Positions 290 through 54,412 of a stretch of DNA of 64,000 nt are shown piece by piece. The translations under genes were made by a program, and so were the position numbers. Position 1 is the stretch's first letter. Each line of letters opens with the position of its first letter. The notes under the pieces were generated by a model, which did not search any database, had not been told where the DNA came from, and saw only the letters and a program-made list of their open reading frames with translations. Location: positions 62,001-126,000 of IMG/VR virus record IMGVR_UViG_3300034072_001021, one strand, 5' to 3'.

Positions 290-2467
290 TTAGAACAGCA
301 CGCTTCCTGCAGCTGCCAGCAACTCACCCACTCCAATCACAGCGCCTTTGGCAACCTTGCCAGCAACACTCCCAACGGTCTTGACCGCATCGGTCAATGC
401 ACCCTCCATCCCCTCATCAGCAGAAAGATCCACTGCATCCTCAGGCATCATCTCACGCAACTGATCAATGAACTTCTCACCATCATCCAATGTGGCAGAG
501 GGGTTCTCAATCAGGTTCTCAAGAGATGTCTCCAAATCGTCCGGAGTCTTGACGCCCAGGATTGCAGCGACCTGTTCTTTAGACCATTGCAGAATGTCTT
601 TGGAGCGAGTCGATACGTTGGGCTCTTCGCCTGTATCGAGGAATACGTCAAACACATCGCAGCGATGTACCTGACCTACCCGATCAACACGAGCGATGGT
701 CTGAGTCCGTTCGTAGTCACGGAATGGCGAGTTAGTGAAGACCAGGGTGTTGGCCATCACCAAGGGCATTGCTGTCGACAACGACTTGAAGGTAGCGATC
801 AGGGGGTTGATATCCTCACTCTCACCAAACTTCTTGATGATTGCTGGGAGATCTTTGTTGGTTTCACCATAGACCAGAATCGGCTTGTAGCCTGCTTCAG
901 TCAACAGACGATCCAGTTCCTTGACCACTTCAACGTAGCTGGTGAAGATGACAGTCTTGCTCTTGGCATTGTCAATGATCCGATCCAGCGGAATCTTCGG
1001 CAGCATGTCCAGATGACACTGGATACGCATCTTGCCCAGAACCTGACTCAGCGCTTCGCCCATGACCTTGAGATCGACGTACTTGATGATCGCACGGACA
1101 TTCAAGAACGGTTTCCGGTAACGGTCTGGGAGAGAAGGTACGATGGTCTTCAGCTCGTAGCGATTACAGAACATCACCATATCCTTCATGGTGACTGGAT
1201 CATAACCCTTACGGATCTGCTTGATGTAGCCAGTGTAAAGGTTGAAGTCTTGGACACCTCGACCACTCAGTGACTTGGCATGAAGTTCCATGCAGGTCGC
1301 GTAGAGCTTTTCATACTCCGGCATTCCCTTACGGTAGAACTCCAGACGTTCTTTGATGAACGCCCCCATCTTGTCACGGACGCTGGCCAGCGTGTAGTCC
1401 TTACCATTGGAGATCGAGATCTTCTCCTCGTGGTAATCCACACCGGGTGTTTCGACTTCCTCTTTCAGTACCTTAAAGGAAACGATACCGATACGGTTAG
1501 CCAGAATCTCGTTGGCGCGCTTGGCTTCTTTGCCGAAGATCTTCTTGAACGCCATCTTGACTTCTGGTGTGAAGTCATTACAGATCGTGGTCAGGAGTGT
1601 GATTGCTTCGGAGCCAATGGCCTTGAACGGTGTACCGGAAGCATGGACGGTGTCGCGGGAATTCAGAACCTTGATCAGCTCGATGAGGAACGATGTACGG
1701 CCTGACTCTTCGTTGAAATTGTGCGACTCGTCGATCCCGGTGTACACCTTACCGAAGTTACCCGAATTGCGCTTGGCGAACTCAAGGAATTTCTCGAGGT
1801 AGTCGAAGTGGACAATGTAGTACTTCTTACCTGGAACAGGATCGGTACCACTCAGGCTGTGCCAGTAATCCACAGGACCTGACTTGAACAGGGTGTTGGC
1901 TGTCTTGACCCAGACATCGATGACCGAGTTCTTCGGCACGATGAACACGTTGGTATCTACACCGAGACAATGTCCCAACGCATAGTTGGTGATCGTCTTA
2001 CCACCACCGGCTGCCACGTCCATCAACATCCCTTTAAGGGAGTATTCCCACGTCGTACGGTCGTACAACTGTAAAAATTTAAGTTGATAGGTAAATAATG
2101 TGACATTCAGATCGTCAAGTGCCTTGTAGTTAAGGCGTGGTTTGAAGTCACCGGAGCCGATATTCCGCAACCAAGTGGAACGGAGTAACTCTTCATAGAT
2201 CCTTTGGAGTTGCCGACGGCCCACGTAAGTGCGACGAGACTGCATCAACTGTTCAATGATGTACAGTAGTTCGATGGCAAAGAACTTAGGCACTTTGACA
2301 TGGGAACGACCAACAGCAGTGAACATGTTGTTTGTGATCTTGCTCGTCTTCCAGTGGTTATACACGTCTTTTGCAAACCGCAGACCTGGGATTCCGTTCA
2401 CTATAATGTGAGAATCCGTCTCCTTTACGGAGATCAGTCCCAGCAGACGCGAAAAGTTTGCGTACAT
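290..2467 (-). CDS. superfamily II (SNF2/DEAD-like) helicase, phiKZ-type
   Basis: Walker A AAGGGKT, DESH motif II, SGTP, helicase-C motifs (KTVIFTSY, QTIARVDRVGQ). Start placed at MYANF after AGGAATATAGGA; the longer 4015 start in the track is antisense read-through. Confidence 0.85.
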   Translation of the reverse strand: MYANFSRLLGLISVKETDSHIIVNGIPGLRFAKDVYNHWKTSKITNNMFTAVGRSHVKVPKFFAIELLYIIEQLMQSRRTYVGRRQLQRIYEELLRSTWLRNIGSGDFKPRLNYKALDDLNVTLFTYQLKFLQLYDRTTWEYSLKGMLMDVAAGGGKTITNYALGHCLGVDTNVFIVPKNSVIDVWVKTANTLFKSGPVDYWHSLSGTDPVPGKKYYIVHFDYLEKFLEFAKRNSGNFGKVYTGIDESHNFNEESGRTSFLIELIKVLNSRDTVHASGTPFKAIGSEAITLLTTICNDFTPEVKMAFKKIFGKEAKRANEILANRIGIVSFKVLKEEVETPGVDYHEEKISISNGKDYTLASVRDKMGAFIKERLEFYRKGMPEYEKLYATCMELHAKSLSGRGVQDFNLYTGYIKQIRKGYDPVTMKDMVMFCNRYELKTIVPSLPDRYRKPFLNVRAIIKYVDLKVMGEALSQVLGKMRIQCHLDMLPKIPLDRIIDNAKSKTVIFTSYVEVVKELDRLLTEAGYKPILVYGETNKDLPAIIKKFGESEDINPLIATFKSLSTAMPLVMANTLVFTNSPFRDYERTQTIARVDRVGQVHRCDVFDVFLDTGEEPNVSTRSKDILQWSKEQVAAILGVKTPDDLETSLENLIENPSATLDDGEKFIDQLREMMPEDAVDLSADEGMEGALTDAVKTVGSVAGKVAKGAVIGVGELLAAAGSVLF

Positions 2468-2515
2468 TCCTATATTCCTTGTTACATCAGGGAGTAAAGT
2501 TAAAGAGGTCATAAG

Positions 2516-4093
2516 ATGACACAGAAAACCCAAGGTCAGGTCTCCGTGAAAGTACTGCTGAACGAGACCCAGAACTACCGCGCAAGCCTGGAAAGCCTCA
2601 TGGAACTCGGCCGTAGCCTGCTGAGCGTCCCGAGCCTGGAATCTTCTTCCGCCGACGCTTTCCAGAGCACTGCCGAACACATCCTGGAAGAAGCTGGTCA
2701 TCAAGAAGACCTTCAAGTGGTCGACGGCGTTGCTGAACCGGAAGCTCGTATCGAGCTGATCATGCAGGACGTCCTGGTTCCGCGCCTGACTGAAGTCGAG
2801 CAGATCGAGAAGTCTCTGGCTGAGAAAGCCGAAGACGAGATCCCCACTCCGTTCACCACCCGTGACGCTGAAACTGCAGCGGCCATGGAATCTCTGCAAT
2901 ACCGTACTGACATCCTGGACATCTTCGGCGAAAACATCCGCAACGTGAAGACCATTCTGTCCATGGAAGGTATGCCGGTGGACGTGGTTCGTCCGATGGT
3001 TGTCAGCATCGTCAAGCGAGCTGGTGAAGAAGCTGCTTCGTTCGGCGTCTCGCTGGAAAGCGTTGAGCAGACCCAGGTTCTGGGCGAAATGGCCGATGCT
3101 GTTCAACGTATCGAACAACTCGTCGAGAAAGCTCACGAGACCACCACTGCTCAAGCCGAGCGCATTCGTTCCGAAGCCGAAGCTATCGGCAGTGACGGCC
3201 AGGACAAGATCGGCGATCTGATCGAACGTCATCGCGCCGACAATCCGAGCGGTGCACATCTGGCAGCCGGTACGTCGGTAACCACCGTGGCCAGCGACAA
3301 TGCGTCGTCCGATACTTCGGAAGAAGACAACCAGCTCGATGCTGGTGATGGTACCGATGAAGGTACTGACGATCTCGATGCTGGCGCCGAAGGTGCTGAT
3401 GAGTCGGCTGACGCCAATCTCGATCTGGACAACGCTGAAGGCGGCGATGACCTGGCCGGTCTCGATGATGCCGCTGGTGCTGAAGGTACTGGTGAAGCAG
3501 ACGACACCAGTGGCGATGCCGGTGACGATGTTGACAACGTCGATGATCTGTCCGGTGGTGACGCAAGCGATGACACCGGTAGTGCTGACGATACTTCCGG
3601 CGATGACCTGGGTGGCGATGACACTGGCACTGACGACAATGTCGAAGGTGCTGATGACGTAGCAGGCACGGATGATGTCGACAACGCTGAAGGTACTGAC
3701 GGTACCGAAGGTGGCGATGACACCGATAACCAGGAAGAGGAAGAAGAGGAGTCGGACAATAAGGACGACAACAAAGCTTCTATCGAATCCATGGTTGCTC
3801 CGGTCACCATCGAACAAGCCGACTATCGCATCGGTGACGAAGCTGACCAGATCCGTGGTCATGTCCTGAACCTGCTGGCTCTGCTGAATCAGAACGAAAT
3901 GCTGACCGAAGCTGGTCAAGTGGCCCTGTCCAACATCCAGGCCAACGAAGGTAATAACTTCGTCCTGACTTCCGACATGTTCACCGATCGTGCCGCCGAA
4001 GTCCTGATCCGTCATTACGACACCTGGATCGCTGCTGCATTCCGTGATGGTGAAGCCAACCTGCGTGGCATGAGCATCCTGCTCGATAGCTAA
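2516..4093 (+). CDS. probable internal head protein with acidic low-complexity linker
   Basis: Strong phage codon bias; many S/A-x-E motifs (SLE, AME, SME, SVE, SIE) like phiKZ prohead-protease sites; D/G/A-rich tract. Confidence 0.7.
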   Translation: MTQKTQGQVSVKVLLNETQNYRASLESLMELGRSLLSVPSLESSSADAFQSTAEHILEEAGHQEDLQVVDGVAEPEARIELIMQDVLVPRLTEVEQIEKSLAEKAEDEIPTPFTTRDAETAAAMESLQYRTDILDIFGENIRNVKTILSMEGMPVDVVRPMVVSIVKRAGEEAASFGVSLESVEQTQVLGEMADAVQRIEQLVEKAHETTTAQAERIRSEAEAIGSDGQDKIGDLIERHRADNPSGAHLAAGTSVTTVASDNASSDTSEEDNQLDAGDGTDEGTDDLDAGAEGADESADANLDLDNAEGGDDLAGLDDAAGAEGTGEADDTSGDAGDDVDNVDDLSGGDASDDTGSADDTSGDDLGGDDTGTDDNVEGADDVAGTDDVDNAEGTDGTEGGDDTDNQEEEEEESDNKDDNKASIESMVAPVTIEQADYRIGDEADQIRGHVLNLLALLNQNEMLTEAGQVALSNIQANEGNNFVLTSDMFTDRAAEVLIRHYDTWIAAAFRDGEANLRGMSILLDS

Positions 4094-4109
4094 TGTAGAA
4101 GATGAATCG

Positions 4110-4136
4110 CGAGGGTGGCAACACCCTCGTTGATTT
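4110..4136 (+). terminator. terminator-like hairpin
   Basis: CGAGGGTG-GCAA-CACCCTCG followed by TTGATTT, just after the stop at 4093. Confidence 0.6.
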
Positions 4137-4189
4137 GTAAGGACTTTTGCCCCCTATAGTGTGTAGAGTTCTGCTCTTTTACAATTTAG

Positions 4190-4575
4190 CTACATCAAGA
4201 ATGCGCTTAATTGCGTACTGTTCGGGTTGGATCATCCTCTGACCCTAATGCCACCTCTCGATAGGTTGCAGACTAGGTGAGAGGTAACCCCTCTCACCTC
4301 CCTATTCGTTGCCCCCGATGAACTCGTCGTGATAGTCGGGGTGGTTGCATGTTCCAGCATCCTGCTTAATCTCGCTACCGGTAGGCTCTGTTGGTAAACG
4401 ATGGCCGTTGACGCGTTGCTCCGGCCGCTGCCATAGCGTTCATTTGCATCCGGCTGTGTAAATGAGCGTGACAAGTGTAAGTGCCCGCTCCTCATTTCCA
4501 CTTGTCGTAAAGTGCAGCCTCCAGTGATCTTCTCTTCGCCTAGAGATTAGATCACTGGGGGAAGTACTTTATTAT
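4190..4575 (+). ncRNA. candidate highly structured non-coding RNA
   Basis: Intergenic stretch with at least 7 consecutive helices; non-Watson-Crick pairs are mostly G-U on the + strand; no convincing ORF. Confidence 0.5.
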
Positions 4576-4617
4576 GCCGTCTTCCAATATATGTACGTGT
4601 CATTGAGGAGGGTAATC

Positions 4618-4986
4618 ATGCTTACGCTGTACACGATTGCCATTCCTCAATGGAGGAAGGCTAAAGAAAAGAATATAGAGTTGTTCGACATCACTGTTAA
4701 GTCAGGTTATGAACCGTTTGCCCCGTATAAGGACGTACTGTACGCCTACAAGCGCGGCGAAGTAACTGACGACCAATATACCACCATTTATTTAGACAAG
4801 CTTAGAGCGCATTTTAGAGCCCGTCCAGAGGACTTTCAGAACCTATTGGAAAGAGATGCTCAATTAGCAATTGCTTGTTATTGTACTGCGGGTAAATTCT
4901 GCCATCGTCATTTGTTTATTCAGTTCATTAAGGAGATAGCTGAGGACAACGAGTACGACCTCGTCTATAACGGCGAAATAGTATGA
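4618..4986 (+). CDS. DUF488/YeaO-like protein
   Basis: GAGGAGG RBS before ATG 4618; FAPxxxxL...Y pattern and C-terminal LAIACYC...CHRHL typical of DUF488-like proteins. Confidence 0.55.
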   Translation: MLTLYTIAIPQWRKAKEKNIELFDITVKSGYEPFAPYKDVLYAYKRGEVTDDQYTTIYLDKLRAHFRARPEDFQNLLERDAQLAIACYCTAGKFCHRHLFIQFIKEIAEDNEYDLVYNGEIV

Positions 4987-5021
4987 CCGTTCCTTAAGCA
5001 ACCTCCCTATCTGAGGTCATT

Positions 5022-5576
5022 ATGGCTTGCAAGACTGATGGATTTAAATTTGATCCAGAGAAGACAGCGCTGGAGAATCTCTTTGCACTGATCTACCGGA
5101 CGAACCGTGTAGCACTCAATCCCAGCGTAGTGGACGTTGAGAACGTACGGCCCATGGAAGAAGATGAACACGGTGACAACACCATCATCTTGGTAAAGGC
5201 TAAGGCAGGTGGACGTCTCAAGGGTGAGAAGGATCTCTACTACGCTCGGGCAGATATCGACAACCATTACCCTGTGTTCCAGATCGATGCTGAAGAAACC
5301 ATCGGCATCAATGACAAGGACGCACTCATTGAGTATCTCGACAACAAGTTCAATCTGGTGGACGGTGAGTTCGATATCGACATCAACGAACCATTTGAAT
5401 CCTTGATGGCTCATACGTCGATTGACATTTACGCCAAAGACCAATCACTGATCTACATTGGTCGCAAGACCATTCACATCTTCTGGTCTGGCGGTATCCG
5501 CCGTATCACCGAAGAAGGCCAGCTACGAATTACCGAGGATGGCGAGATTCGCATTACCGGCGATTTGATCGTTTAA
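5022..5576 (+). CDS. putative virion structural protein
   Basis: GAGGT RBS; NTxILV...YxR pattern seen in phiKZ-like tail/baseplate accessory proteins; C-terminal RITExG x3. Confidence 0.6.
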   Translation: MACKTDGFKFDPEKTALENLFALIYRTNRVALNPSVVDVENVRPMEEDEHGDNTIILVKAKAGGRLKGEKDLYYARADIDNHYPVFQIDAEETIGINDKDALIEYLDNKFNLVDGEFDIDINEPFESLMAHTSIDIYAKDQSLIYIGRKTIHIFWSGGIRRITEEGQLRITEDGEIRITGDLIV

Positions 5577-5585
5577 TGACACACG

Positions 5586-5619
5586 GCATAGAGGGAGGGC
5601 TGATGCCCTCCCTCTATGC
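5586..5619. terminator. bidirectional hairpin between convergent genes (GCATAG...CTATGC family)
   Basis: Perfect 15-bp stem GCATAGAGGGAGGGC/GCCCTCCCTCTATGC. Confidence 0.7.
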
Positions 5620-5640
5620 GTTTATGCCGAAGGCATGGAC

Positions 5641-7818
5641 TTACGGAGCAGCCGGGTCCAGGTCTGCAGCAGCAGCGTCGAACGCAGCAGCCATCTGAGT
5701 CATCAGGTCACTGATGGCAGCAGTGTTGGCAGCGATAGCAGCGTCCTGGGCGTTCTGCTTGATCGACAGGGCAGCAGGAGTCACGAACTTGTCGGTAGAA
5801 GTACCGTCGATGACGTCCTGGTTGCTGGCGGTCAGGTCAGCAATGGTGCGACCTTGCAGTTTCGCCGAGTCCACGGCCTGGGCAGTGGCGTCCAGCTTGG
5901 TACCGATCTGGGTCATCAGGGTGTTGATGATGTCCGGATCGTTATTCAGCGCAGCAGCCAGCTCGTTGATGGTGTTCAGAGCTTCCGGTGCAGTGCCAGC
6001 CAGTTCGGCGATGGCAGCATCGATGGCGCCTTTCACGCTCAGCGAGGTGGTGTACTTGACATCGTCAGTACCAGCGATCACTTCAGCAGTGGTAGCTTTC
6101 GCCGCTACGAAGTTGTTGAACGCAGTCTGCAGAGCAGCCAGGTCAGTTGCAGCGCCGCTCTCGGCAGCTTCCACAGCCAGACGCAGCTGTTCCAGAACGG
6201 CGTCCAGAGCCTGCTGAGTCGGAGCCTGGGTGTCAGCATCCGGGAAGGTGACGGTGTTGGTACCGATGGCATCGCCAGCTTCCAGCTTGTCACCGATCTG
6301 GCCTTCCAGAGCAACGACGCGGCCGTCCAGAGCCGAGACAGCAGTATTGGTGCTGGCAATGGCGTTGGCGTTGGCAGTGGCCTGATCCTGCACACCCTGA
6401 ACGCTGGCTTGCAGAGCATCGCGTTCGCTGGTGATGCGGGCATCCAGCGCAGCGTCTTCCTGATCCAGACGCTCGACGATGGTCTTCAGGTTCTGAGCCG
6501 GGTTCTCACCGTCGGTAGCCAGTGCAACCGGGTTCAGACCCAGATCGCTTTCGCCAGCCTGCAGGAAGTTCGAACCTTCACCAACAGCAGCTTCCAGCGC
6601 ATCGATGCGCGCATCGATCGGAGTCAGGGCGGTGGCGATTTCAGCTTGTACCTGGGTCAGGTTCAGCTTGGTGTCGATGACGGTAACCAGAGCTGCAACA
6701 GCGTCTTCCTGGTTGGCCAGAGCGTCAGCCAGTTCCTTCAGGGTATCGAGGGCAGCCGGAGCGCCATCGACCACGCCGTTGATGGCAGCGTCAACCGCAG
6801 CCTTCAGGCCCAGGGCAGTGATGTACTTGGCATCGTCGGTACCGGCAACGGCTTCAGCCGAAGTGGCTTTGGCGGCGATGAAGTCGCTCAGTGCAGTCTG
6901 GACGGCAGTGATGGAATCGGCGTTGGTGCTGTCAGCAGCATTCAGAGCAGCGACCAGAGCGGTCAGAGTCTGACCACCGACGCTGTACTGACCGAAGTCA
7001 TCGGACTTCAGAACGACCTGGCTCAGGTCAACGCCAGCTTGCGCTTCGGCGATGATCTCGGCCTTGGTCTTGCCTTCGAGCTTGGCCGAGTCGGCAGCTT
7101 GTTCCAGCTTGCCGAGCTTGGAAGCCAGGCCAGAAGCCAGATCCGTACGGATAGCCGCTTCGCGACCGTCGGTGTAGGCATTGGCATCGGCTTCAGCAGC
7201 GTCTGCCTTGGCAGTGGCGTCGGTAGCAGCAGCAGCGATAGCAGCAGCCTGAGCAGCGTCGGCCTTGGCGGTGGCATCGTTGGCAGCGGTAACCAGAGCG
7301 GCAGCCAGATCGGTCTGCAGCTGGGCGATGGCAGCCTGGTTGTCACCGGCGATCTGCTGCAGAGCAGTCAGGGCATCGGGGTTGTTCTGCAGGGCAGCAG
7401 CCAGTTCCTGGATGGTGTCCAGGGTTTCCGGAGCGGTACCGACCTTGTCAGCCCAGAAGGCTTGCAGGTTGGCCGGGGTCAGGAACTTGTTGGTCAGCAC
7501 GCCAGCAACAGCTTCGACGTTGGTAGCGGTGCCGAAGTTGTCGACGTTACCCAGGCCGACTTGGGCCTTGGTTACGTTGTGCGGGTTGTCCTGGCGAGCG
7601 ATGAAGGCTTCGAATTCAGCGTTCAGGGCAGCCAGATCAGCAGCAGCGGCATCACCGATCAGAGCTTGTACTTCAGCGAGGGTCTTGCCACCCAGCTTGT
7701 TGGAGTCGAACGCTACGGCGTTGATGTCCAGCTTGCCATCGAGGCGACCACGAATGGCGGCGTTGAAGCTAGCCAGGGCGGTCAACAGATCCGTCAGTTT
7801 TTGAGCATCGAGAGACAT
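5641..7818 (-). CDS. tail-fibre-like virion protein (Ala-rich coiled coil, NPHxVTKAQVGL repeat)
   Basis: DNPHNVTKAQVGLGNVDN motif; repeated ATxxExxAGTDDxKY and APExLxTIxELAAAL units; DSxKLxG motifs. Confidence 0.8.
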   Translation of the reverse strand: MSLDAQKLTDLLTALASFNAAIRGRLDGKLDINAVAFDSNKLGGKTLAEVQALIGDAAAADLAALNAEFEAFIARQDNPHNVTKAQVGLGNVDNFGTATNVEAVAGVLTNKFLTPANLQAFWADKVGTAPETLDTIQELAAALQNNPDALTALQQIAGDNQAAIAQLQTDLAAALVTAANDATAKADAAQAAAIAAAATDATAKADAAEADANAYTDGREAAIRTDLASGLASKLGKLEQAADSAKLEGKTKAEIIAEAQAGVDLSQVVLKSDDFGQYSVGGQTLTALVAALNAADSTNADSITAVQTALSDFIAAKATSAEAVAGTDDAKYITALGLKAAVDAAINGVVDGAPAALDTLKELADALANQEDAVAALVTVIDTKLNLTQVQAEIATALTPIDARIDALEAAVGEGSNFLQAGESDLGLNPVALATDGENPAQNLKTIVERLDQEDAALDARITSERDALQASVQGVQDQATANANAIASTNTAVSALDGRVVALEGQIGDKLEAGDAIGTNTVTFPDADTQAPTQQALDAVLEQLRLAVEAAESGAATDLAALQTAFNNFVAAKATTAEVIAGTDDVKYTTSLSVKGAIDAAIAELAGTAPEALNTINELAAALNNDPDIINTLMTQIGTKLDATAQAVDSAKLQGRTIADLTASNQDVIDGTSTDKFVTPAALSIKQNAQDAAIAANTAAISDLMTQMAAAFDAAAADLDPAAP

Positions 7819-43167: not shown

Positions 43168-43199
43168 AAGGGTAGGGACTTCCCTACCCTTTCTTTTTT
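43168..43199 (+). terminator. intrinsic terminator
   Basis: AAGGGTAGGGA/TCCCTACCCTT plus T tract. Confidence 0.75.
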
Positions 43200-43209
43200 G
43201 CCGTTTTGA

Positions 43210-43238
43210 TTCGATTCCAATTTATTTCAACAATACAT
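43210..43238 (+). promoter_or_regulatory. bipartite promoter-like motif TTCGATT-N14-CAATACAT
   Basis: Same elements and spacing at 42040-42068; heads a cluster of small genes. Confidence 0.5.
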
Positions 43239-43293
43239 AGTGCTGGTGATAAGGAAGAATGATCTTCCATTAACCTAAGTAAGGAGCATCCAC

Positions 43294-43434
43294 ATGAGCA
43301 ACTTCCTGAGCCTGATGCTTGTTCTGTGCTTTGCTGTTGCCCTTGTGGGCTGCAAGCACGAAGAAGTAAAGATCCCGGCAGACGCCACTGCTGAACAAAT
43401 CATCGCCATGCAAGTGGCAAAGAAACAACCCTAG
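43294..43434 (+). CDS. 46-aa lipoprotein (not in ORF track)
   Basis: TAAGGAG RBS; MSNFLSLMLVLCFAVALVGC lipobox then KHEEVKIPADATAEQIIAMQVAKKQP. Confidence 0.7.
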   Translation: MSNFLSLMLVLCFAVALVGCKHEEVKIPADATAEQIIAMQVAKKQP

Positions 43435-43444
43435 GAGAAGCACC

Positions 43445-43555
43445 ATGAAAGAAGTAATTTCCACCATTGCTGTCTTTGCCGGCATTTACATCGGCATCGA
43501 TCAGTACAACCGCTACATGGCCCGCAAGGACCGTGCAGCCCTCAAACGCGGCTAA
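43445..43555 (+). CDS. 36-aa single-TM microprotein A (not in ORF track)
   Basis: TAGGAG RBS; MKEVISTIAVFAGIYIGIDQYNRYMARKDRAALKRG. Confidence 0.7.
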   Translation: MKEVISTIAVFAGIYIGIDQYNRYMARKDRAALKRG

Positions 43556-43566
43556 GGAGAAGAACC

Positions 43567-43677
43567 ATGGGTTCTGTATTCAAAACCATTGCAATCGTTG
43601 TAGGTTGCTACATCGTCATCGACCAATACGGTCGGTTCTGCAAGCGCCAGGATGCGAAAGCATCTAAAGAAGGCTGA
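43567..43677 (+). CDS. 36-aa single-TM microprotein B, paralog of A (not in ORF track)
   Basis: TAAGGAG RBS; MGSVFKTIAIVVGCYIVIDQYGRFCKRQDAKASKEG. Confidence 0.7.
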   Translation: MGSVFKTIAIVVGCYIVIDQYGRFCKRQDAKASKEG

Positions 43678-43745
43678 GTCTCTCAGAGGGGTTCGCAAGA
43701 GCCCCTCTCGGAGAAACACCCTAACCAGTTCTTAAGGAGAACACC

Positions 43746-54187: not shown

Positions 54188-54376
54188 ATGTCTCAAGATT
54201 CAGTTGAAATGAAGTACGATCCAGCTGATGGCGGCATGGCCCCGTCCCCGAACATTGCCAGTCATTGGCGTACGTTCAATGGCGACACCGCATGGATGTA
54301 CAATCCGTGGACAGGTGAGCTGCGGGATGCACGCGATGTGGGTTCCGATCCACAAGGCATACTGATCACTCCGTAA
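54188..54376 (+). CDS. small conserved phage protein (62 aa)
   Basis: GGAG RBS; YDPA.G...HWR...AWMYNPWTG..RD..DVGSDP.G pattern. Confidence 0.65.
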   Translation: MSQDSVEMKYDPADGGMAPSPNIASHWRTFNGDTAWMYNPWTGELRDARDVGSDPQGILITP

Positions 54377-54383
54377 TAGCGGA

Positions 54384-54412
54384 CATAGGGGAGGGCTGAG
54401 CCCTCCCCTATG
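54384..54412. terminator. bidirectional hairpin between convergent genes
   Basis: Perfect 13-bp stem CATAGGGGAGGGC/GCCCTCCCCTATG. Confidence 0.7.

Follow-up and report, generated by a model that had tools for sequence, protein, structure and literature searches.

A large predicted structured RNA conserved in related nucleus-forming jumbo phages matches no described RNA family

The locus and its relatives

The locus lies in a 64,000-nt stretch of viral DNA (hereafter the window; all coordinates refer to it), which corresponds to bases 62,001-126,000 of a 259,140-bp contig with direct terminal repeats (IMG/VR record IMGVR_UViG_3300034072_001021). The nearest named relative is Pseudomonas phage pPa_SNUABM_DT01 (hereafter DT01; MW735835, 265.5 kb). 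The phage is phiKZ-like: it has a phiKZ-type major head protein and an RNA-polymerase subunit, a homologue of the phiKZ nuclear shell protein gp054, chimallin (E = 4e-22, a 650-aa open frame), and a homologue of gp68 (E = 3e-47), which the phiKZ RNA polymerase literature treats as a subunit of the non-virion RNA polymerase (nvRNAP) (PMC4666361). The element studied here occupies the gap between two + strand genes (Table 1). The upstream gene encodes an acidic protein of 525 aa that has no Pfam or PHROG family, gives only chance-level leads in an atlas search, and matches only DT01 among 50,697 GenBank phages. The downstream gene encodes a DUF488 protein, the homologue of PHIKZ151. Its homologues align from residue ~10 of the open reading frame that starts at 4591, so that the likely start is 4618 and the non-coding stretch is 4094-4617.

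Table 1. Features of the locus, in window coordinates (all on the + strand)
Feature	Span	Helix arms or sub-positions	Description
Acidic-protein gene	2516-4093		Clade-specific, 525 aa
Intrinsic terminator of the acidic-protein gene	4109-4138	hairpin 4109-4130	9-bp G+C-rich hairpin plus T-rich tail; not part of the RNA; present in this member only
Promoter-like motif	4146-4163		T-tract (A-tract in most relatives), 5-6 nt, then TATAG followed by TGTG (TATG in the relatives); inferred start region of the RNA
P0	4165-4177	4165-4168/4174-4177	4-bp 5'-proximal hairpin (AGAG/CUCU here, AGGA/UUCU in most relatives), followed by the conserved UUU(A/C)ACA
P1	4202-4217	4202-4206/4213-4217	5-bp hairpin (UGCGC/GCGUA) with the 6-nt loop UUNANU
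P2	4224-4245	4224-4231/4238-4245	8-bp hairpin
P3	4249-4270	4249-4256/4263-4270	Hairpin; short in the window, L156 and L171, where it lacks the C-rich loop that the others carry (ACUCCCCCAU in most, shorter C5-run variants in some)
P4	4275-4299	4275-4284/4290-4299	10-bp perfect hairpin
Core three-way junction	4306-4401	P5 4306-4310/4397-4401; P6 4313-4319/4335-4341; J6/7 4342-4353; P7 4354-4366/4380-4394	P5 is a long-range helix that closes the junction and encloses P6, J6/7 and P7; near-invariant P6 loop (L6) (G/A)AACU(C/U)(G/A)UCGUGAUA at 4320-4334; P7 loop motif CGCUACC at 4373-4379
P8	4402-4427	4402-4405/4424-4427	Hairpin with an inner helix and the conserved UGCUCC
P9	4436-4469	4436-4449/4456-4469	14-bp hairpin capped by the invariant CCGGC loop (4450-4454)
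P10	4470-4506	4470-4477/4499-4506	Hairpin; loop with the conserved, anti-Shine-Dalgarno-like GUGCC(A/C)(C/G)CUCCUC (4481-4492)
P11	4507-4572	4507-4535/4542-4572	Long composite terminal stem with the invariant GUGCAGCCUCC / GGGGGA(A/U)G(U/C)AC and a conserved 2x2 internal loop (AG/AU); terminator-like, as a U-rich tail follows in most relatives
Promoter-like punctuation of the DUF488 gene	4573-4593	TATGCCGT 4573-4580; TATATG 4588-4593	Outside the RNA
DUF488 gene	4618-4986		Homologue of PHIKZ151; likely start after the Shine-Dalgarno sequence GAGGAGGG

The presence of a long non-coding spacer in an otherwise gene-dense genome raises the question of whether it is conserved. In DT01, a syntenic spacer of 513 nt aligns with that of the window in long invariant blocks separated by stems of different sequence. 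To collect further homologues, we scanned IMG/VR and JGI metagenomes for exact motifs, made a protein-anchored scan, and confirmed the candidates with a covariance model of the core (model R1). A full-length covariance model was not built, IMG/VR and all metagenomes were not searched exhaustively with one, and R-scape was not run. This resulted in 18 distinct sequences: the window, DT01 and the homologous loci that we designated L004, L009, L014-L019, L039, L148, L151, L154, L156, L158, L159 and the divergent L171. Every member whose contig is long enough to judge lies in a phage contig of 116-277 kb. Model R1 finds exactly one copy in each of the three genomes in which copies were counted (the window's own, DT01 and a further one, G001), and none in the phiKZ-like phage PA1C, in SPN3US or in LucasX. 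The three hits of a pattern search in 185,579 species genomes are not the RNA. Among GenBank phages only DT01 has the element, and there it is unannotated. Synteny is constant: an SNF2-like helicase (- strand), the acidic protein (+), the RNA (+), DUF488 (+), a DUF7941 virion protein and tail-fibre-like proteins. The acidic-protein gene lies directly upstream of the RNA in every locus that reaches far enough upstream. The flanking proteins are only 43-76% identical to those of the window across the set.

Folding and covariation

An earlier note, made from the sequence of the window alone, had described 4190-4575 as an intergenic region of about 390 nt that folds into stacked helices and lies after a terminator. 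This observation is confirmed. All the helices that it listed (P2, P4, P6, P8, P9, P10 and P11) are in the sequence at the stated coordinates, and so is the upstream terminator. The note had named a folding energy no better than that of dinucleotide-shuffled controls as a result that would count against it. We found -153.6 kcal/mol on the + strand against -113.5 +/- 5.7 for the shuffles (z = -6.99, with 0 of 100 shuffles as good), whereas the - strand gives z = -4.17. The spacer of DT01 folds at z = -6.93. However, the note missed P0, P1, P3, the long-range helix P5 and P7, and the conserved unit is therefore larger than it reported, about 4155-4580, beginning near 4155 and not 4190. The consensus-constrained fold of the window (-159.8 kcal/mol) costs only 3.4 kcal/mol relative to its minimum free energy (-163.2 kcal/mol).

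We then analysed whether the helices are maintained by compensatory changes, the absence of which the note had also set down as grounds for rejecting a structured RNA. In the core (P5 to P8, 4306-4427), on the model-fitted alignment of 18 distinct rows, 98.3% of 518 cells are standard pairs and 20 of 29 pairs change on both sides. The covariation score is 0.581, against 0.03-0.14 (at most 0.144) when the partners are slid by 1-3 columns. Within this set, P8 has double changes in 4 of 5 pairs. The same helices were obtained by RNAalifold on a plain MAFFT alignment, where 18 of 29 pairs were compensatory. The terminal stem P11 also shows 98.3% of cells paired, with 10 of 22 pairs compensatory and a score of 0.411 against at most 0.098. 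For P1, P2 and P4 together, on an unrefined MAFFT alignment, 88.6% of cells are paired and the score is 0.390 against at most 0.252. In this alignment 6 of 8 aligned pairs of P4 change on both sides, and the 5 pairs of P1 are invariant in 11 sequences. P1 is in fact invariant in 17 members and replaced by ACGCC/GGCGU in L171, where it is compensated. MAFFT does not recover the registers of P9 and P10, nor of P2, P3 and P4, so that for these we rely on folds of individual sequences: each hairpin forms in all 17 sequences folded, with unrelated stem sequences, and again in L171. The hairpin around CCGGC has 10-16 bp in these 17 sequences. In P0, two of the four pairs change on both sides between subclades, which argues that this stretch is transcribed.

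Two further pairings were considered and not retained. RNAalifold proposed a long-range pairing of the 5' flank of P3 with the downstream UGCCGU, which we rejected in favour of a two-part P3 hairpin, and UGCCGU is also a generic punctuation of this genome (see below). A pairing of the CCGGC loop with UGCCGU is not conserved in L156, L154 or L171 and is unsupported.

The note's argument from G-U pairs for the + strand holds. In the core, 54 of 518 pair cells (10%) are G-U, and they would be A-C on the other strand, which would lower pairing from 98.3% to 87.8%. There is no conserved reading frame: the longest open reading frames differ in strand, frame and position among 17 members. Hence, the main inference of the note, a + strand structured non-coding RNA of a phage, is supported.

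Comparison with described RNA families

The search of the whole window with the covariance models of Rfam 15, which the note had proposed as a check, gave no hit at the gathering thresholds; the families include ROOL, GOLLD, RNase P, tmRNA, 6S, SRP, group I/II introns, riboswitches and T-box. At E <= 10 in 3900-4900 only chance-level hits appeared (atoC, 20 bits against a threshold of 50; CopA, 17 against 60), and there was no consistent weak hit across nine homologous loci. ARAGORN found no tRNA or tmRNA gene in the window, the two tRNAs of the genome being elsewhere, which agrees with the note. We also considered mimicry of rRNA, because GUAAACGAUG equals positions 812-821 of the E. coli 16S rRNA, and UCCGG..CUAAC and CUGGGG.AGUAC resemble 16S segments in the same order. 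This was rejected, since local alignments of six members against 16S and 23S score no better than shuffles. A literature search found non-coding RNAs reported in phiKZ, 201phi2-1 and PA5oct, but nothing corresponding to this element or to the DT01 clade.

The comparison of the note with ROOL and GOLLD holds only as an analogy. Like them, this is a large, multi-helix, phage-borne non-coding RNA with many invariant unpaired nucleotides and of unknown function, and they are stand-alone genes rather than leaders. The palindromic CCGG in the invariant P9 loop would allow loop-loop self-association, as in the ornate RNAs, but this is inference only and was not assayed. On the other hand, it matches neither Rfam model at any threshold, it is smaller (about 415 nt, against roughly 580 and 800 nt), it is not next to tRNA genes, it is restricted to one clade of Pseudomonas-type jumbo phages, and its architecture is mostly a row of hairpins plus one three-way junction.

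The small RNAs derived from 5' UTRs upstream of tail genes in phiKZ, 201phi2-1, EL and PA3 (sRNA005 / sRNAgp182; PMC11512511) are non-coding transcripts of chimalliviruses placed just upstream of virion or tail genes, ending at a terminator shortly after a phage promoter. The element described here shares this placement, whereas its transcription, promoter and terminator are inferred. They were filtered for less than 250 nt and lie upstream of the gp182 homologue, whereas this element is about 415 nt and lies upstream of the PHIKZ151 homologue. Homology to sRNA005 was not examined directly. RNAIII of Staphylococcus aureus is likewise an RNA of several hundred nucleotides built as a series of hairpins, several with C-rich loops that could pair with Shine-Dalgarno sequences. 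Here the corresponding elements are CUCCUC in the P10 loop, the C5 run of the P3 loop and GCUCC in P8. There is no homology to RNAIII and no encoded peptide, and the invariant L6, the CCGGC loop and the junction are not C-rich and have no counterpart in that mechanism. Riboswitch and T-box leaders share with this element a conserved junction followed by a hairpin plus U-run upstream of a co-oriented gene, but they have no Rfam match here, the element is much larger, no convincing conserved antiterminator was seen, and it is separable from the downstream gene.

Conserved positions and transcription signals

About 120 positions are invariant in 11 sequences, mostly unpaired. They comprise the loop and stem of P1, UUCGUUGC, the P6 loop AACU..UCGUGAUA, GUUC in J6/7, CGCUACC in the P7 loop, GUAAACGAU, (U)GCUCC in P8, CCGGC in the P9 loop, GUGCC..CUCCUC in the P10 loop, and both strands of the lower P11 with its internal loop. 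The divergent L171 shows which parts are indispensable. It keeps P0, L6, GUAAACGAUG, the P10 loop, the lower P11 with its internal loop, and the CCGGC hairpin, although this hairpin sits on the tip of P11 instead of before P10. In L171 the P7 loop is replaced by an extra hairpin, and a separate terminator hairpin follows P11.

At the 5' boundary all 18 members have an A- or T-tract, then 5-6 nt, then TATAG-TATG next to GTAG(G/A)A, with variants in the window (TATAG-TGTG), in L039 (TATGT-TATG) and in L171 (TATATG). In phiKZ the nvRNAP late promoter is TATG, with transcription starting at the G (PMC4666361), and a similar cccTATAGTG motif precedes the tRNA cluster of this genome. There is no sigma-70-like promoter on the + strand. 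The assignment as a promoter is by analogy only: initiation was not examined, and TATAG is enriched only about 2-fold upstream of genes, like other AT-rich pentamers, so that the conservation of the motif leaves its function undecided. In most members the upstream stop codon lies only 15-25 nt before the motif, with no hairpin between.

At the 3' end, most relatives have 6-15 U within about 20 nt after P11. The evidence for an intrinsic terminator is mixed and settles the matter neither way, because the window has only the weak tail UUUAUUAU, a simple terminator scan does not call P11, and L171 uses a separate hairpin. The motif T(A/T)TGCCGT that follows is not part of the RNA: T[AT]TGCCG occurs 83 times in the genome against about 16 expected, mostly as the 3' foot of conserved, often palindromic, intergenic hairpins.

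The lack of a transcript was another outcome that the note had named as a refutation. The sequence is present in many public sequencing runs, including RNA libraries, but the four runs examined carry the entire 5-kb region as DNA-like contigs of phage strains roughly 94-99% identical, with no RNA-specific coverage or ends, and thus they speak neither for nor against a discrete transcript. These near-identical environmental strains show 2 substitutions in 4088-4595 and 28 in 4596-4880. The low count also extends into the upstream gene, so a recombination boundary is as good an explanation as selection on the RNA.

An independently transcribed RNA is the favoured interpretation

Our best explanation is that window positions ~4155-4580 (+ strand) are the gene of a previously undescribed structured non-coding RNA of about 415 nt, confined to the DT01-like clade of nucleus-forming phages. 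What the data demonstrate is a fold of twelve helices (P0-P11) with compensatory changes in most of them, including a three-way junction with near-invariant junction strands; a set of invariant loops (L6 AACUCGUCGUGAUA, the CCGGC loop of P9, the CUCCUC loop of P10 and the AG/AU internal loop of P11); and one copy per genome scanned, always in the same place. The rest of our reading is deduced. In this view, the RNA would be transcribed as its own unit by the phage RNA polymerase from the TATAG-TATG motif, start with P0, end at or just after P11, and accumulate as a stable folded RNA that acts in trans through its invariant loops and junction, as a scaffold for one or more protein or RNA partners or as a self-assembling or catalytic RNA, and not as a leader of the next gene. 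We give this reading a probability of about 0.6, for four reasons. First, the conserved start motif is followed by a covarying 5' hairpin. Second, in L156 a Kelch-repeat gene and a terminator separate the RNA from DUF488, while the promoter-like TATATAG and the ATATATAG motif stay with DUF488, 1.2 kb away from the RNA. Third, L171 terminates at a different hairpin yet keeps P11. Fourth, the amount and distribution of invariant unpaired sequence fit a tertiary fold or partner binding better than an expression platform. Furthermore, DUF488 homologues of phiKZ-, SPN3US- and LucasX-type phages have no such spacer or RNA, which speaks against a functional link to DUF488, a family for which the literature gives no function.

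No partner of the RNA is known. Among trans mechanisms, the one with some sequence basis is the pairing of the C-rich CUCC loops with purine-rich Shine-Dalgarno-like sequences, in the manner of RNAIII, but we regard it as doubtful. No complement to L6, the P10 loop, P1 or the 5' leader exists in the phage genome at up to 2 mismatches. Short Shine-Dalgarno-type seeds and host targets were outside this search, so that the presence of C-rich loops does not decide for or against such pairing, and the C-run of P3 is absent from the window, L156 and L171.

The alternative that survives best, although unlikely, is a cis-acting leader, which the note had also listed: a riboswitch-like sensor or a protein- or RNA-sensing attenuator in which the core junction would be the sensor and P11 plus the U-run the expression platform controlling read-through into DUF488 and the tail-gene module. 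The element lies directly upstream of a co-oriented gene in all members and ends in a hairpin plus U-run, both strands of P11 are unusually conserved in sequence for a plain terminator, a junction with invariant strands looks like an aptamer, and prematurely terminated small RNAs derived from 5' UTRs are documented upstream of tail genes in phiKZ and 201phi2-1 (PMC11512511). In L156 the inserted gene starts about 25 nt after the U-run, with no obvious promoter of its own. However, the obligate position of a leader in the 5' UTR of its gene, with no intervening promoter, is not observed: promoter-like TATGCCGT and TATA(T)G motifs lie between P11 and the DUF488 start and travel with DUF488 when the two are separated. 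By eye we found only a 5-bp possible alternative pairing (UCCUC with GGGGA); both segments are invariant, so covariation gives no verdict on a mutually exclusive terminator and antiterminator, and ligand binding was not assayed. At 415 nt and 12 helices, the element is also far larger than described riboswitch classes.

Less likely still, the element could be the structured 3' UTR of the acidic-protein mRNA, or a processed 3' fragment of it, that would stabilise or localise this mRNA or be cut out of it. The acidic-protein gene has the same narrow distribution as the RNA and is adjacent to it, and in most members no terminator lies between, so that read-through transcription or an origin as a 3' UTR is possible. 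Yet in the window a good terminator separates the two, a motif of the phiKZ-promoter type conserved in 18 of 18 members sits exactly at the boundary, and the amount of invariant unpaired sequence exceeds what a stabilising 3' UTR needs. An element acting as DNA (a replication origin, a packaging site or single-stranded DNA hairpins) is very unlikely. It is suggested only by a large non-coding spacer next to a helicase gene in a genome with few spacers, and the packaging or replication element mentioned in the note has no support: G-U pairs are on the + strand only, the cumulative GC skew shows no inflection near genome position 66 kb, the genome has its terminal repeats elsewhere, the helices covary as in RNA, and loops rather than duplex sites are conserved. 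A chance hairpin-rich spacer or a decayed gene, favoured by nothing beyond the absence of expression data, is effectively refuted by the covariation counts and by the conservation of about 120 nucleotides between phages with such divergent flanking proteins.

Discussion

The element works most like the stand-alone large phage RNAs GOLLD and ROOL and is a member of neither, and we therefore class it as a new RNA family within this general kind, whose function is not known. Bacterial and phage RNAs longer than about 400 nt with many conserved unpaired nucleotides are rare, and most of those described have turned out to be ribozymes, ribonucleoprotein cores or self-assembling particles. A cultured member exists, DT01 on Pseudomonas aeruginosa, so that expression, partners, structure and phenotype are directly testable, and the displacement of the CCGGC hairpin onto P11 in one relative gives a natural experiment on which parts matter. 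The element sits in phiKZ-like phages, which separate transcription (inside a protein nucleus) from translation and whose RNA biology is barely explored. A more tentative possibility is that it represents a new class of large, complex-folded RNA specific to nucleus-forming jumbo phages, whose invariant junction and loops would form a catalytic or self-assembling RNA or the core of a phage ribonucleoprotein. It might work together with the equally clade-specific acidic protein encoded directly upstream, and its role would lie in phage development or in host takeover.

Genes flanking the RNA

The annotation of the genes near the RNA required two corrections (coordinates in the table below). The 1241-aa ORF listed on the - strand is an artefact over part of its length; the antisense frame stays open across the GAT/GAC-rich acidic-protein gene. 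The real gene encodes the SNF2-like helicase of roughly 726 aa, as in Pseudomonas phage pPa_SNUABM_DT01 (DT01). In the DUF488 gene, the mechanically delimited ORF begins upstream of the position to which both the Shine-Dalgarno site GAGGAGGG and the alignment to homologues point as the start codon. The acidic protein has a conserved helical N-terminal domain (~265 aa), a low-complexity middle of about 150 aa rich in D, G, E, A and T, and a conserved C-terminal part of ~105 aa that is lacking in the relative L171. It has no family match. It has the same narrow distribution as the RNA, and its gene lies directly upstream of the RNA in every locus that reaches far enough upstream.

One relative, L156, carries a Kelch-repeat protein gene plus a strong terminator inserted between the RNA and DUF488, and a second Kelch-repeat gene follows DUF488. 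Another, L171, is a divergent member of the RNA family with a domain rearrangement: the CCGGC hairpin sits on the tip of P11, the P7 loop is replaced by a hairpin, P1 is compensated, and there is a separate terminator. In public sequencing runs, strains roughly 94-99% identical to this phage occur in subsurface, soil, sediment, and wastewater data sets. Their divergence jumps abruptly at the start of the DUF488 region, which suggests a recombination boundary, and indel or replacement joints are seen at two other places.

Coordinates of the features described in this section (G000, whole genome of this phage; L139, L156, L171, individual loci)
Feature	Coordinates	Strand
ORF of 1241 aa (partly artefactual)	window 290-4015	-
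SNF2-like helicase gene	window 290-2470	-
Acidic-protein gene	window 2516-4093	
DUF488, mechanical ORF start	window 4591 (region 4591-4620)	
DUF488, Shine-Dalgarno site	window 4605-4612	
DUF488, favoured ATG	window 4618	
Region compared in public runs	window 2001-7000	
Jump in divergence	window 4596	
Indel or replacement joints	window 3371-3392 and 6418-6635	
Kelch-repeat gene and terminator insertion	L156:750-1900	
Divergent, rearranged RNA	L171:2000-2500	
Intergenic hairpin, examples	window 5590-5625 and about 54370-54410 (G000 116409)	
Intergenic hairpin, variant	window 43170-43210	
Apparent spacer with small ORFs	window 43170-43740	
ORF-free stretch with tRNAs	G000:228905-230287 (L139:2406-3755)	
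Conserved block in the tRNA stretch	about L139:2650-2745	
Spacer region with GTAAAAAATAAC and TATATTTTGTAG	G000:227787-228451 (L139:1288-1952)	

Other spacers and intergenic motifs of the genome

An ORF-free stretch of 1.38 kb contains tRNA-Asn(GTT) and tRNA-Thr(TGT), and is preceded by a cccTATAGTG motif like the one at the 5' boundary of the RNA. About 630 nt upstream of the first tRNA are unexplained (fold z = -2.9), and a block of roughly 90 nt is conserved in DT01 and in the genome G001. A second motif, GTAAAAAATAAC, occurs three times in the genome, including upstream of the chimallin homologue. At the copy listed in the table it is followed by TATATTTTGTAG, a 2-mismatch copy of the RNA's 5' motif, which opens a 580-nt ORF-poor spacer that is not conserved at the DNA level in four relatives. 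A further apparent spacer, of 570 nt, holds three small ORFs, each with a Shine-Dalgarno site; their products look like small hydrophobic peptides, so this is not an ncRNA.

Across the whole genome, we found at least 35 copies of a conserved intergenic hairpin, (C)GGCATAGAGGGAGG-loop-CCTCCCTCTATGCCG, which is often a perfect palindrome, and T[AT]TGCCG occurs 83 times against about 16 expected. Because its 3' foot is TATG, the core of the phiKZ late promoter, this hairpin is probably the generic terminator/promoter punctuation of the phage.
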